A stretch of DNA of 52,655 nt, filler included, from Bipalium vagum (taxonomy: Eukaryota), in the NCBI GenBank assembly GCA_037834085.1. It is 3 parts of 3 records of this genome, joined end to end, with 100 filler letters (N's around TTAATTAATTAA, not from the genome) between each part and the next. Parts side by side here need not be neighbours in the genome. Positions count along the whole stretch, not along the records: positions 36,739 to 52,655 come from JBBMKC010138600.1; 2 more parts are not named here. One strand, given 5' to 3'. Each line of letters begins with the position of its first letter. Within the stretch, counting starts at the first letter, position 1. Shown here piece by piece: positions 37,790-52,655 of the stretch. A program made the translations under genes and the position numbers. The notes below the pieces were generated by a model. The model was not told where the DNA came from. It saw nothing but the letters and a program-made list of their open reading frames with translations, and searched no databases.

Positions 37790-38625
37790 ACCTTTCACAA
37801 ACCACAGCACCATACGTCTTTGTTTCTTTATATTGTATTTTAAAGAGCCTTACAATTTCTCAATAAAGGCTGTTTAGGGTTTTAGAAAGGTAACATTATC
37901 AAATTTGAGATATCAATAGTAAAAAATGTCAATAATGACGTCATGCTTCACCCAATTACATCATCAGCTTAGAGTTCCCTGGACAGTTTCTTTGGAAAAC
38001 TGTAGTTGTATTTTGTTAAACATTCATGATGGTATGTAACATTACGTCATAATTGAAATTCAAAGAGTTCCAAAGTACATTTTCAGTGTAAAGTGCCATT
38101 CGATAACGTTCTTGGCATGATAAGCAAGATCATACGCTACTTACTAAAGAACTAGGTGTTCATTTCAAACATGTATATGTAGGAACTTGTCAGTTTTTGT
38201 CATGGAACATGTCAAGATAAGTAAATAACACAATATTATAAATAAAGAATAAAATTAATAATCACTTTTTGCTTTTCGGTATATTGAATCTTTCCCTGTT
38301 CGTGTTACTCAATGGAATTGATGTCTCGGTTGAATATTATAAAGCGCTCAAGTTGTGCTTCAGTAAAGAAGTTTTGATTAAAGGATCAAATGACAACAGT
38401 GATAGAAAATATCAAAGCATTTTAAGACAGCCAACCCGAGATTTCTTCGACGTGTAATGTCTGTAAAGCCAGAAACTGCAAAACTGACAATTGGAATAAG
38501 AGTGACGTTTCTTCAGAAAATACCCGCTTGAGTCAGAGAGAATGTGGAAAACGTGTATTTCCCTCAACACTGCGAGAAGTGGTTACAACTTTCACTTTAT
38601 CTTTTGATTTTATGTCCTTAAAGTA
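37790..38625 (+). pseudogene. Divergent family-A-like pseudogene
   Basis: A 55-nt GT-AG intron (38032-38086) sits in the same ATG|..|TGT (Met|Cys) context as family A. Then CKVPFDNVLGMISKIIRYLLKN*..ELVSF, LSLFVLL and ECGKRVFPS (compare ICGAKTFPS). Many stops. Confidence 0.5.
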
Positions 38626-38961
38626 AAACTGGTTTTTCATTTGTATATGCCTGTCACCGAAGTGTACAATATAAAATCAGAAAACTGATTGAAGTAATAA
38701 TTTCTCCCAAAAAAAGTTCTTCGATTATCGACAAGGATATTTTATAAATAAAATTAAATGCCCAACACCGACAATAGTAATTAGAGCATAAGTCAAACAA
38801 AAACTGTTGAGAGCATCCTTTAGATATAGAACAGTTTCAAAATTATTTACCAACATCATTCCCTAAAAGTCCCCACGTTCTTTAAAGGGAAAAAAGTGCT
38901 TAGATAATTTATTTCAAAACACATTAATGTTTAACAATCACAAAAGTTTTCATTTGATATT

Positions 38962-39492
38962 TTAACCATAGATGCCTTTTGAGGGAAAGGTCTTTGCTCC
39001 ACAAATCTTGAAGATGTTAAAAATATCTTGATATATTTTGTTCAAGTAGAGCTTTGATTTCAAAAACACTAAGTGGTTCTTTTTTCTGATAATGTCTTCA
39101 ACGAACCTGTCTACGTCTACTGAGTCAAGGGACACAACTTCAAAAACCGTATTTGTCCTCTTTTGTGTCAATATCATTTCTTTCAGAGACTCATAACAAT
39201 TTTTATGAAATTTACACATTCCATTTGTAGCGAATTTCACAATTTCATCCATTACCCTAGTTGCGGTGACGGTCTTTTTCTGAAATTCCGTTTCAAACTT
39301 TTTCAGTATGATAAACAAATTTGTGTTCTTTATCGAACTGACGACCATGAGGATATTGGAATCTTTATTCTTAGCCACAGTTGCCAGTTCACTTACATCA
39401 TTGATCTCTACTTCGATTTTACCATTGGTATTGATATATGAAATTGTTTTCTTCATAAAATTGTTTCTTATGATATTAACGGCCAGAGGGCA
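38962..39492 (-). CDS. Family A gene 1, exon 2 (uncharacterised ~176-aa domain)
   Basis: Acceptor TACATTTAG|TGC, in frame with ORF 38962-39456. Confidence 0.85.
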   Translation of the reverse strand, partial: CPLAVNIIRNNFMKKTISYINTNGKIEVEINDVSELATVAKNKDSNILMVVSSIKNTNLFIILKKFETEFQKKTVTATRVMDEIVKFATNGMCKFHKNCYESLKEMILTQKRTNTVFEVVSLDSVDVDRFVEDIIRKKNHLVFLKSKLYLNKIYQDIFNIFKICGAKTFPSKGIYG

Positions 39493-39537
39493 CTAAATGT
39501 AAACAGTCATTAACATTTAAACAATGAAAGAGCTCAC

Positions 39538-39816
39538 CATGTTTTTATATTTATTGTTGACGGTGTAAACAGCAACTGTAAAACATTTATCATTGGACTG
39601 GCATACCTCAGACTGTGCATAAATTAGACACAGTAAACTTTTCATGTCAAATTGAAAAGCGCTGCAATCGGTCAAGTGGCAGTTAATGGCGCATTCAATT
39701 TTCGATGACATAGCGAGTATCAGTCGAGCTGGCGACATACATTTCTGAGTAGATTGATAAAAGATATTCGACTCCACCATCAATATCATTAGAGCTAAAA
39801 ATAATTTAATCATCAT
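39538..39816 (-). CDS. Family A gene 1, exon 1 (signal peptide + PAN/Apple-like domain); spliced product 269 aa
   Basis: Leader MMIKLFLALMILMVES. SSKIECAINCHLTDCSAFQFDMKSLLCLIY fits the PAN core eC...C....C.af.f......C.l. Donor ATG|GTGAGC; 45-nt phase-0 intron 39537-39493. Confidence 0.85.
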
Positions 39817-40057
39817 ATTTCATAAAATGAAAAACGACTTTCTATTACATCTTTTATCCTGCTGGAAACGGGGAAGAGAGAAATTTTCTTCAATTTCGTT
39901 TTTGTTCGCTTACTCTGCTAGACAATTTGGCAACTGATTTAACCAGATAAAACAAACGTTTAATAAGATTTTTAATTGATGTGATAAATTTGGAAAACAA
40001 TTTGTGATTTAACGTGATTCAGTTCTTTCACATGTTCACACTTCCATAGCTCAGATA

Positions 40058-50130: not shown

Positions 50131-50559
50131 GGTAAAACGAACAAATATTTGGCTGTAACTTGTTAAAACGAAGTTAAGTGCGAATTGAATGAGAAAATCA
50201 TGAGCTTATATACTCCTGATTTTCACATTCCTGATCTCTTGATTGGTGGAAAATAAAACTTTCCATTAATAGAATAAAATGGGGTTTTTTGCTATTTTAG
50301 GAAAGTTCTTATATTATAGAGCTTACTAAATATAGCCTCTCTCATATTATTATTTTTTCATATTAATGTATTCTTTAATCTTGAGAACAATTCAATCATG
50401 AGCAATAAGAGAGGAATGAGGATTCTGAATTCAAATATACTTCCTTTTTTGTTACATGTTCCGCCTATGTAACTGATAACATTACGTTGTAACATGGGTA
50501 TTGCAAAGGTATTCTAACAATGGTAAAATTATTTAAAAACCATAGAAAGATTCGAATTG

Positions 50560-51130
50560 ACAATTCTTGTTCTCCTCTCGGTCTATTGCTATTATGGATA
50601 CATCGTAAGTAATATATACACCTATCCTAAATAAACACCTAATGAGATGACTACAAGTATAAAAATTACTGATTTAAGAACAGATACGCCGAACACAATG
50701 GTAAGCTCAAATTTACAATTGAGTTACATAGAAAACCACTGCATGTGTGCTGGACGGACATTATTGGTGCTTTTGGCCCCGAACCATATGAGTTGCTGTG
50801 GATTACCCTATCAAAAATGAACTAAAAAGTGATTTGATAAAATTATTAAGTCAGGTTTTAGAAAAATGACGACTATCTTTAGTGCAGTTCAACTACTACT
50901 GATTGTATCCCAGTCCTGAAAGGGGTCAAACAGGGGTACCGTTTATCTATGTACATTTTGTGTATCAGCTTAAACTTTATCCTTGAGATGAGCTGTAAAA
51001 AGTGAATCAACTGGATATTTTTGACCTCAAAATCCCAGGATTGGTATACGTTGATGATCTGGTGTTATTTCTATAAAGTTCTGAATGGAAACTTTGGTTG
51101 ACTATTAAGATTAACATTAAAAAAGCTCTT
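50560..51130 (+). mobile_element. non-LTR retrotransposon RT relic
   Basis: Reads DIIGAFGPEPYELLWITL, IPVLKGVKQGYRLSMYILCISLNFIL and IPGLVYVDDLVL (the GV.QG and YADD motifs). Confidence 0.85.
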
Positions 51131-51689
51131 AATGCTCAGAGCGCATGGTGAACCAAGATACGAGTTTCCATATACTTTTGTCTTTAGTATTTTAAGTTCT
51201 AACTTACTTAATGTAATGATAAAAATAATCATAAATTTCATATCATAAGTAAAAGTATCTTGTTGTACTGTTCTTCATGTGTTGTAAAGATATCTTCGAT
51301 CGCACGACATTGTGAAACACTTTCTAGGATCTCGATCCTTAGCCTTTTTGTCTTTAAAGTCTTGTATCTGTTTTGAGTAATGTGAAGAGGCATAGGTCCA
51401 TTTCATTTCTGTTGGAGCAATATGCATAACCATTGTGCACAACATTTCAATCGAAATATTTTGCATCAATTTATACTACTTTTTAATGATACAAGTTCGC
51501 TAATCTCTTTTAACAATGGTGACATATTAGGGTCGTCAAGTATTTTCGTCCTAAAGTTTTGTCATTACAAAATATTTAGTAATGTAAATTTATTTTTATG
51601 ATGACGTTGTTTTAATCATGTAATTTAGTATAATAATTTTTGAAATCGATTGACGTAAATTTGACGTAACAAATCTTTAGAAAACGATT

Positions 51690-51870
51690 AACCAAAAATA
51701 TAGAGTGTGGCTTTGTTTGTTATAAAAATTCAAACAAGGTGGAACGGCCGATGAATCACATCGCAATTTGTGTCAAGTATTATGAATCTGGTTGGACATT
51801 TTTGTGCCATCTGCCCTACATTACAGTGTCACGAGATCGATCAGCATTCTTTTCAAAAACAAACAGTTCA
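51690..51870 (+). mobile_element. Small mariner fragment
   Basis: Reads KFKQGGTADESHRNLCQVL, resembling the start of a mariner HTH, joined to a degenerate C-terminal piece. Confidence 0.45.
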
Positions 51871-52544
51871 AATTATGGGTAACACTAGTTTATTTTTAGA
51901 AGTCATGTTTTCTTAGTTTATTTTTAGAAATCATGTTTTCGTCAATATATGTTGATAAATTATAGTTTCTTTGCGTTTAAATAGAACTTTACATTACAAG
52001 AACATAAATCATCATAAAATTGCTATTGATATCTTGATGTATTGTCCACACTTAAAAAGGAATGGGAAATGCACGTTGAAACGAAAGGAAATTTTCCGGG
52101 AATAATCTTAACTTCTGATATACAATTAGTGAATAAGTAAATTTAATAAATGTAACATGTGGAAAAAAGAGTAACTGAAGAAAAACAGTTTTATTTGGAA
52201 TATTTGTTTACATTAATGAATACGGAACCTTGAATAAAACTGTGAATGTAATGAATGAGGAAAGATCGGAAGTATTTAAGGAGGTCATTGAAAAGGATAT
52301 AAGATAAAAAGACCTTTTTTAATTAATTTCGTTGTCAACATCTGAGACGTGACCGCTGTCAGTTGGATAGTCAAAGATTTCCAAGAGAAGACTTCATTTT
52401 TTAATAGAGATTTTGCATTGCAGTGACACCAGGAACATTTCAAGAAGTAATGACAAAGGTCATTGGTAAAATCAAAGGAGCTCTGGTATATCTATACAAC
52501 GTGATTAAATTATTTCATATATTCACTCTTCTATATCTCAGATA

Positions 52545-52655
52545 TTATAAAAAAACAATGTTATTTAGAAAATGTCTGCTTCTCTTTTCAGTAGCAAGAA
52601 CATCTCTACCCAGTAATAAGAAATATTTATTATCCTTAAAGTTCATCAATGGATT
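52545..52655 (-). CDS. Family B copy 4, 3' end (runs off the window)
   Basis: Reads NPLMNFKDNKYFLLLGRDVLATEKRSRHFLNNIVFL*. Synonymous differences from copy 1 include TTC/TTT, CTA/TTA and AAC/AAT. Whether it is intact is unknown. Confidence 0.55.
   Translation of the reverse strand, partial: NPLMNFKDNKYFLLLGRDVLATEKRSRHFLNNIVFL

Follow-up and report, generated by a model that had tools for sequence, protein, structure and literature searches.

We analysed a piece of the Bipalium vagum (Eukaryota) genome assembly GCA_037834085.1 that covers positions 36739-52655 (record JBBMKC010138600.1; no N, approximately 30% GC) of a window of 52,655 nucleotides, the window being the whole stretch presented, in which three parts of three records are joined end to end with filler between them. 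The minus strand of this piece carries two intact, paralogous two-exon genes, hereafter gene 1 and gene 2, which are accompanied by three decayed copies of the same unit (Table 1). The products of the intact genes are probably secreted, and they appear to combine a cysteine-rich module resembling PAN/apple domains, encoded by exon 1, with a C-terminal domain of predicted alpha/beta type, encoded by exon 2. Translation, searches, alignments and folding were carried out for each exon on its own.

Paralogous genes and their decayed copies

Direct reading of the minus strand gave a protein of 269 amino acids for gene 1 (93 codons in exon 1 and 176 in exon 2) and of 266 amino acids for gene 2 (92 and 174 codons). 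In both genes, the exons are separated by a phase-0 intron with GT..AG borders, and the two introns, which are 45 and 44 nucleotides (nt) long, align with each other. Because both introns hold in-frame stops, the two genes appear as four entries in the list of open reading frames (ORFs). A first-pass annotation, made from the sequence alone, had described two genes of these lengths with the same intron coordinates and the same ORF splitting, and had counted 11 shared cysteines, all of which agrees with our reading. Each exon shows 57% identity between the two proteins (E 2e-37 and 5e-70), which have seven cysteine columns in common in exon 1 and four in exon 2, with a total of 11 cysteines in gene 1 and 12 in gene 2. 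An AATAAA signal lies approximately 50-60 nt 3' of the stop codon in both genes, and the DNA similarity between the genes stops just past it. On the other side, both genes have a TATA-like [A/T]TAAAAG about 29 nt upstream of an initiator (Inr)-like TCATTTT, which is itself about 10 nt before the ATG; these elements may have a promoter role. An out-of-frame upstream ATG was also observed, 7 nt ahead of the main start codon and within the Inr-like TCATTTTATGA (minus strand, 39823-39821 in gene 1 and 43301-43299 in gene 2), and this ATG is lost in the decayed copy 3.

Both intact genes are under purifying selection. The ratio of non-synonymous to synonymous divergence (dN/dS, Nei-Gojobori, calculated exon by exon) is 0.27 overall, 0.40 for exon 1 and 0.21 for exon 2, at a dS of approximately 1.07. 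The differences between the genes number 78, 52 and 113 at codon positions 1, 2 and 3, and the excess of synonymous over non-synonymous change is highly significant (Fisher p = 4e-15). The low dN/dS, together with the retained GT..AG borders, TATA/Inr-like elements and AATAAA signals, fits two transcription units that would have been kept by selection since an old duplication.

Exactly three further copies were found in the piece by a combination of tblastn, self-blastn and six-frame hidden Markov model (HMM) searches. Copy 3 derives from a full-length unit and is nearest to gene 1, with similarity extending approximately 700 nt upstream, to 45388; its exon 1 bears deletions of 13 nt and 1 nt, a 47-nt deletion has taken the beginning of exon 2 along with most of the intron, and there are further deletions and a loss of the 3' end. 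Copy 4, which is inverted and nearest to gene 2, keeps the terminal part of exon 1, what is left of an intron without its acceptor AG, and the greater part of exon 2; it is truncated at both ends and carries deletions of 26, 38 and 5 nt. Copy 5 consists of exon 1 only, which is frameshifted and interrupted by stops, and a vestige that resembles an intron lies behind it. Thus intact paralogues and pseudogenes from one unit stand side by side, which is the arrangement of a birth-and-death tandem array, and the multi-copy family with living and dead members that had been proposed is real. The pseudogenes placed earlier at 43995-44651 and 45771-46105 correspond to copies 3 and 4, with slightly wider limits; of the one placed at 48900-49240, the exon-1 remnant is genuine, but only approximately 49028-49262 is detectably related to the family. 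The fainter relatives suggested on both strands were not recovered, since all other six-frame HMM matches had E >= 0.09 and the candidate DNA alignments resembled those of shuffled sequences. Among these, a possible sixth copy near 52245-52476 was rejected together with the other faint candidates, as the alignments were no better than shuffles. A copy of the family 5'-flank segment does reach the edge of the piece, and no gene body was detectable beside it.

Table 1. Features of the gene family in the analysed piece (positions along the window).
Feature	Position	Strand	Description or basis
Gene 1 exon 1	39538..39816	-	ATG at 39816; hydrophobic leader (residues ~4-14) and 7-Cys PAN-like module; PAN_1 E 0.41
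Gene 1 intron	39493..39537	-	read directly; aligned with gene 2 intron
Gene 1 exon 2	38962..39492	-	codons 39492-38965, TAA 38964-38962; predicted alpha/beta domain, motif IVKFATNG-C-x5-CY; no Pfam/PDB match
Gene 1 AATAAA, poly(A)-type signal	38908..38913	-	sequence read and self-blastn
Gene 1 TATA-like and Inr-like elements	39824..39857	-	ATAAAAG 39857-39851, TCATTTT 39830-39824; alignment with gene 2 and copy 3
Gene 2 exon 1	43019..43294	-	ATG at 43294; leader and 7-Cys PAN-like module
Gene 2 intron	42975..43018	-	44 nt, GT..AG, phase 0
Gene 2 exon 2	42450..42974	-	174 codons (42974-42453) and TAA
Gene 2 AATAAA signal	42389..42394	-	sequence read and self-blastn
Gene 2 TATA-like and Inr-like elements	43302..43336	-	TTAAAAG and TCATTTT; alignment with gene 1 and copy 3
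Copy 3, pseudogene from full-length unit	43982..44651	-	tblastn E 1.5e-18 (exon 1), 1.9e-13 (exon 2)
Copy 4, inverted pseudogene fragment	45679..46118	+	tblastn E 2e-25
Copy 5, decayed exon-1 remnant	~49028..49262	+	HMM E 2.4e-8 and 1.1e-4
Copy of family 5'-flank segment, at piece edge	52498..52655	+	158 nt; 89% identical to 40011-40168, 83% to 44967-45055

Metagenome relatives and the PAN-like module

Relatives of the family outside the piece are few. In a word-indexed search of 5.8 billion proteins, exon 2 itself found nothing and the family alignments found only three metagenome ORFs, while an exhaustive comparison of 1.84 billion representatives by HMMER recovered P0002 as the single true relative (E 6.8e-4; pairwise E 4e-8). 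P0004 and P0005 emerged on iteration, so that the relatives listed are P0002/P0003, P0004 and P0005, which come from one JGI sample and one ENA assembly. The sequence with the best score in the representative scan, P0001, proved to be a repeat-inflated false positive of 670 residues, built of a five-fold tandem truncated-globin-like unit. A DNA scan of the JGI metagenome returned only the contig L001 that was already in hand, scans of 2.9 million viral contigs returned no relatives, and no annotated protein of any sequenced organism matched exon 2.

Two metagenome contigs, L001 and L002, both of 30% GC, preserve the gene structure. L001 carries a PAN-like exon that is 35% identical to that of gene 1 (E 2e-17), and L002 starts 36 nt before the intron, so only the last 12 codons of its PAN-like exon are present. 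In both, a phase-0 intron of 44 nt occupies exactly the point used in genes 1 and 2, after NN[KR]Y[KN]NM. Judged from these alignments, the two-exon, two-domain architecture is shared with at least one other AT-rich eukaryote, itself with at least three paralogues, and the metagenome homologues are probably from one organism. A strict reading of the term lineage-specific, which the first-pass annotation had applied to the family, is thus not supported, the other eukaryote being represented by metagenome assemblies only. In L001, a 21-nt tandem repeat (positions 1-95, NCKNLKL units in frame) lies just upstream of the PAN-like exon, and the leader exon is off the contig.

At the N-terminus of both window proteins, residues 4-14 form a signal-peptide-like hydrophobic leader with a mean Kyte-Doolittle value of 2.9-3.2, followed by VES|N, and the C-terminus is not hydrophobic. 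The remainder of exon 1 points to a PAN module. PAN_1 (PF00024) was the best or second-best Pfam match for all three exon-1 sequences of the family, with 11.0 bits for gene 1 (E 0.41), 10.8 bits for gene 2 (E 0.47) and 17.3 bits for the L001 exon (E 0.0043). When a profile of the three sequences was compared with 177,635 PDB sequences, the plasminogen PAN domain ranked first (E 0.38) and the N domain of HGF second (E 0.78). In the HMMER alignments, C42, C46, C51 and C63, which are invariant across the three family sequences, fall on disulfide cysteines of plasminogen and HGF, and the residues AFQF fall on the conserved aromatic patch. The family thus has the PAN core pattern C-x3-C-x4-C-x11-C with an aromatic residue after the third cysteine. 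This spacing matches the two core PAN disulfides, which form nested pairs, and the corresponding pairs predicted here are C42-C63 and C46-C51.

These matches make a diverged PAN/apple-like module the likely identity of exon 1, in agreement with the earlier proposal of a PAN/Apple domain, in so far as PAN modules are the best matches in both Pfam and PDB at scores below curated thresholds. Two points speak against the assignment: all three PAN_1 scores are below the Pfam gathering score of 21.4 bits, so that the family threshold is not reached, and the PDB E-values for the PAN matches are only 0.4-0.8. Both would be expected if exon 1 had another small disulfide-rich fold, whose weak PAN matches reflected cysteine spacing and composition only, and the presence of seven cysteines, in place of the usual four to six, would suit such a fold as well. 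We regard this as unlikely, because three sequences match the same family independently, the two best of 177,635 PDB sequences are both PAN modules, and the cysteine spacing with AFQF after the third cysteine matches the core disulfides of plasminogen and HGF.

The C-terminal domain

Exon 2 had been reported as an unrecognised domain, and at the level of sequence it is still so, since comparison with Pfam, NCBIfam and PDB, by sequence or by profile, gave scattered noise only; a structural lead to the TCAF_N family can now be set beside this result. A possible resemblance to the FAM3/ILEI domain was rejected, as neither Pfam nor PDB supported it, and a literature search on PAN/apple families in flatworms or rotifers and on TCAF_N found nothing relevant. 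The alignment of five C-terminal domains has as invariant columns the motif VKF-x-T-x-G-x-C-x5-CY, one further cysteine and hydrophobic core positions. As it contains no invariant His, Asp, Glu or Ser column, the alignment speaks more for a domain with a binding or structural role than for an enzyme.

The structural lead comes from the homologue P0004, whose ESM Atlas model has a predicted template modelling score (pTM) of 0.73 and a predicted local distance difference test value (pLDDT) of 0.67. This model matches its six nearest structural cluster sets with template modelling (TM) scores of 0.70-0.74 over 146-163 of 175 residues, and a 211-residue single-domain cluster with a TM score of 0.60 by target. 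Five of the six sets carry PF27016 (TCAF_N) and the sixth is the IMPa family, whereas generic alpha/beta ATPases in the same list reach TM scores of only 0.42-0.45. Similarly, the top two language-model feature matches of P0004 are TCAF_N (0.93 and 0.92), followed by clusters of GATase-like ThuA, GIFT and DUF4350; the Atlas warns that only two of the ten best feature matches share the top family. By the tool's own flag, the structure and feature searches on P0004 represent one source of evidence.

Several observations count against carrying this lead over to the window proteins. It comes from one tool and from a homologue that has just 21% identity to gene 1; shared-feature counts are low (135-140). 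No sequence-level link was found to TCAF_N, M60 or GATase-like families. AlphaFold models of the window exon 2, made with two and five sequences, reached pLDDT values of 34 and 41 and were unusable; these low-confidence models consist of alternating strands and helices, and Foldseek and VIA searches with them returned noise. The Atlas model of the homologue P0005 was poor and matched nothing. The Pfam set searched, of 24,736 models, apparently predates PF27016, and no TCAF_N match appeared in it at E <= 10. Nor was a Peptidase_M60 domain (PF13402) found in the same protein in any scan, the gene ending 176 codons past the intron with a stop and AATAAA.

On balance, we place the chance that exon 2 has a TCAF_N-like fold slightly above even and treat it as a lead; true homology to TCAF_N would be less probable than the likeness of fold. 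In that case, the domain may belong, as a very diverged member, to a Pfam family described only recently and would not be new. The competing view, that exon 2 represents a truly new family or fold and that the TCAF_N likeness is an artefact of a moderate-confidence language-model structure, appears rather less probable and still deserves weight. Such a fold would account for the silence of every sequence method, for the failure of the AlphaFold models and of the P0005 model, and for the narrow agreement among the ten best feature matches. It would not readily account for TM scores of 0.70-0.74, over most of the 175 residues, with six separate cluster sets, of which five carry TCAF_N, when generic alpha/beta proteins reach just 0.42-0.45.

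Age, turnover and proposed role of the family

The first-pass annotation had inferred a rapidly turning-over family, and the divergence data point the other way. Kimura two-parameter (K2P) distances among the copies in the window are 0.25-0.5, corresponding to 25-40% DNA difference, and they pair gene 1 with copy 3 and gene 2 with copy 4. With a dS of approximately 1.07, a dN/dS of 0.27 and the synonymous excess given above, these distances indicate an old duplication followed by purifying selection, and on this sequence evidence the array is old and not fast-turning. Elsewhere in the genome there are probably several more paralogues, some of them younger, because among the contigs of the public run another contig matches gene 1 at 86% identity over 39220-39728, and because the summed depth over the gene is 56-189, compared with 19-29 for the exact contigs.

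The surroundings of the array are rich in repeats. Between genes 1 and 2, the segment 40465-41907 is a very high-copy repeat, with a summed contig depth of up to approximately 185,000 against approximately 20-30 in the single-copy flanks; it occurs in many variant contigs with internal rearrangements, and has neither a Pfam-matching ORF nor clear terminal repeats. Microsatellites of the (ATT)n/(TAT)n type, 12-30 units long, occupy the array spacers at 42133-42197, 46398-46486 and 46559-46596. A 95-nt segment at 37850-37944 recurs at 43799-43895 with 78% identity, approximately 1 kb downstream of gene 1 and only about 100-200 nt downstream of copy 3, and these unequal distances suggest that DNA was either inserted behind gene 1 or deleted behind copy 3. 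A short ORF at the left edge (36950-37108, minus strand) resembles by eye the C-terminal part of a retrotransposon integrase and has no match in Pfam. The other ORFs of the piece had no Pfam match, and scans of it against Rfam and for tRNAs returned nothing.

Two further explanations of the array were weighed against these data. One is the version of the first-pass annotation, a fast-evolving effector, venom or recognition family with diversifying selection and rapid birth and death. The tandem copies and three pseudogenes within 11 kb are what such a family would leave behind, as are the further paralogues elsewhere, including the one with 86% identity to gene 1; the intact genes also differ in variable patches (residues 26-40 of exon 1, and 66-75 and 101-110 of exon 2) and in N-glycosylation sequons, of which gene 2 has three and gene 1 none. 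But an overall dN/dS of 0.27 at a dS near 1, together with in-window copies that have diverged by 25-40% in DNA and so imply slow turnover here, makes this version improbable; two sequences cannot show site-specific positive selection either way. The other explanation, that a transposon or an endogenous virus carries the ORFs as cargo, or that they are unexpressed relics left intact by chance, draws on the repeat-rich setting, on the very high-copy repeat between the genes and on a genome copy number above two. It is hard to reconcile with strong purifying selection and GT..AG splice sites kept in both genes, and neither Pfam transposon or viral domains nor relatives among the 2.9 million viral contigs were found. 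The depth over the gene, moreover, is a few times that of single-copy sequence, compared with approximately 185,000 for a real repeat. We consider this explanation very improbable.

Thus the reading that we prefer, and hold to be fairly probable, is an old tandem array of a two-exon family in an AT-rich (approximately 30% GC) eukaryote, with two functional and at least three dead members, in which each functional gene encodes a probably secreted PAN-like plus alpha/beta binding protein. The hydrophobic leader is consistent with the secreted family that had been suggested earlier; the roles named with it, in mucus, defence, adhesion, venom or gamete recognition, are candidate functions. Weighing on the other side, the leader was recognised by a hydropathy heuristic only, and the sole public run containing the locus is apparently one of DNA, and the exact contig in that run, over 38985-40163, keeps the intron of gene 1.

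Under this preferred reading, a protein of approximately 250 mature residues would enter the secretory pathway via its short hydrophobic leader and act outside the cell as a disulfide-stabilised, non-enzymatic two-domain binding protein. Contact with a ligand, either protein or glycan, would be made by the PAN-like module. The 175-residue alpha/beta domain may be related to TCAF_N, the domain found ahead of M60-like O-glycoprotein peptidases, but stand free and lack the peptidase; its part would be to offer a further surface for binding or scaffolding. In the window genes, the odd seventh cysteine of exon 1 and the cysteine that opens exon 2 could form an inter-domain bridge.

This is a real but fairly ordinary lineage-restricted family, unannotated and probably secreted, that is not unique to the Bipalium vagum genome. 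More tentatively, and with odds that we would set below even, the genes may represent a new extracellular architecture, in which a PAN/apple-like module is joined to an alpha/beta domain that stands free of any peptidase and is either TCAF_N-like, though extremely diverged, or entirely new; this architecture would seem to be confined to under-sampled AT-rich eukaryotes and might serve as a non-catalytic binder of mucin-type glycoproteins. If the genes are expressed, they constitute an unannotated secreted family whose second domain none of the sequence libraries tried could detect, and they would add a new partner to the PAN/apple repertoire. They might also show TCAF_N working alone outside M60 peptidases, which could help to explain a poorly understood domain. 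Otherwise, they are one more lineage-restricted secreted family in a repeat-rich genome and will be useful mainly for the annotation of that genome.

Comparison with known systems places the family at some distance from each of them. With the PAN/apple modules of the plasminogen N-terminal domain, the HGF N domain, the factor XI/prekallikrein apple domains and the nematode and apicomplexan PAN proteins, it has in common the core cysteine spacing, the AF after the third cysteine and a predicted extracellular setting, and an outer cysteine pair could tie the ends of the module as in apple domains. It differs from them in its sub-threshold scores and seven cysteines, and in that a single module appears fused to an alpha/beta domain in place of kringles, protease, lectin, kinase or ZP domains. 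In TCAF_N, the N-terminal domain of the TRPM8 channel-associated factors and of many M60-like/IMPa-type peptidases, the likeness lies in the superposition of the P0004 model over nearly the whole exon-2 domain; it is a likeness of the homologue's model and is unaccompanied by detectable sequence similarity. In contrast to TCAF_N, the domain described here stands C-terminal to the PAN-like module, has a conserved C-x5-C loop and is followed by no M60 peptidase, M60-like_N or helical domain.

Non-catalytic class-I glutamine-amidotransferase-like domains (ThuA, the GIFT domain of IFT52 and DUF4350) are lower-ranked feature neighbours of P0004 at 0.87-0.88 and have a similar predicted beta-alpha-beta alternation. 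In addition, a helix followed by NG in exon 2 recalls the GGG turn of these domains, a correspondence that we presume and treat as a lead only. No catalytic triad is seen in exon 2; the feature scores are below 0.9, which the tool regards as leads only, and there are no Pfam matches to these domains. At the level of genome organization, the closest parallel is found in the tandem, lineage-restricted birth-and-death secreted families of invertebrates, which likewise combine a head-to-tail array, an inverted fragment, pseudogenes and dispersed paralogues, whereas the copies described here are old, under purifying selection and not rapidly diversifying.

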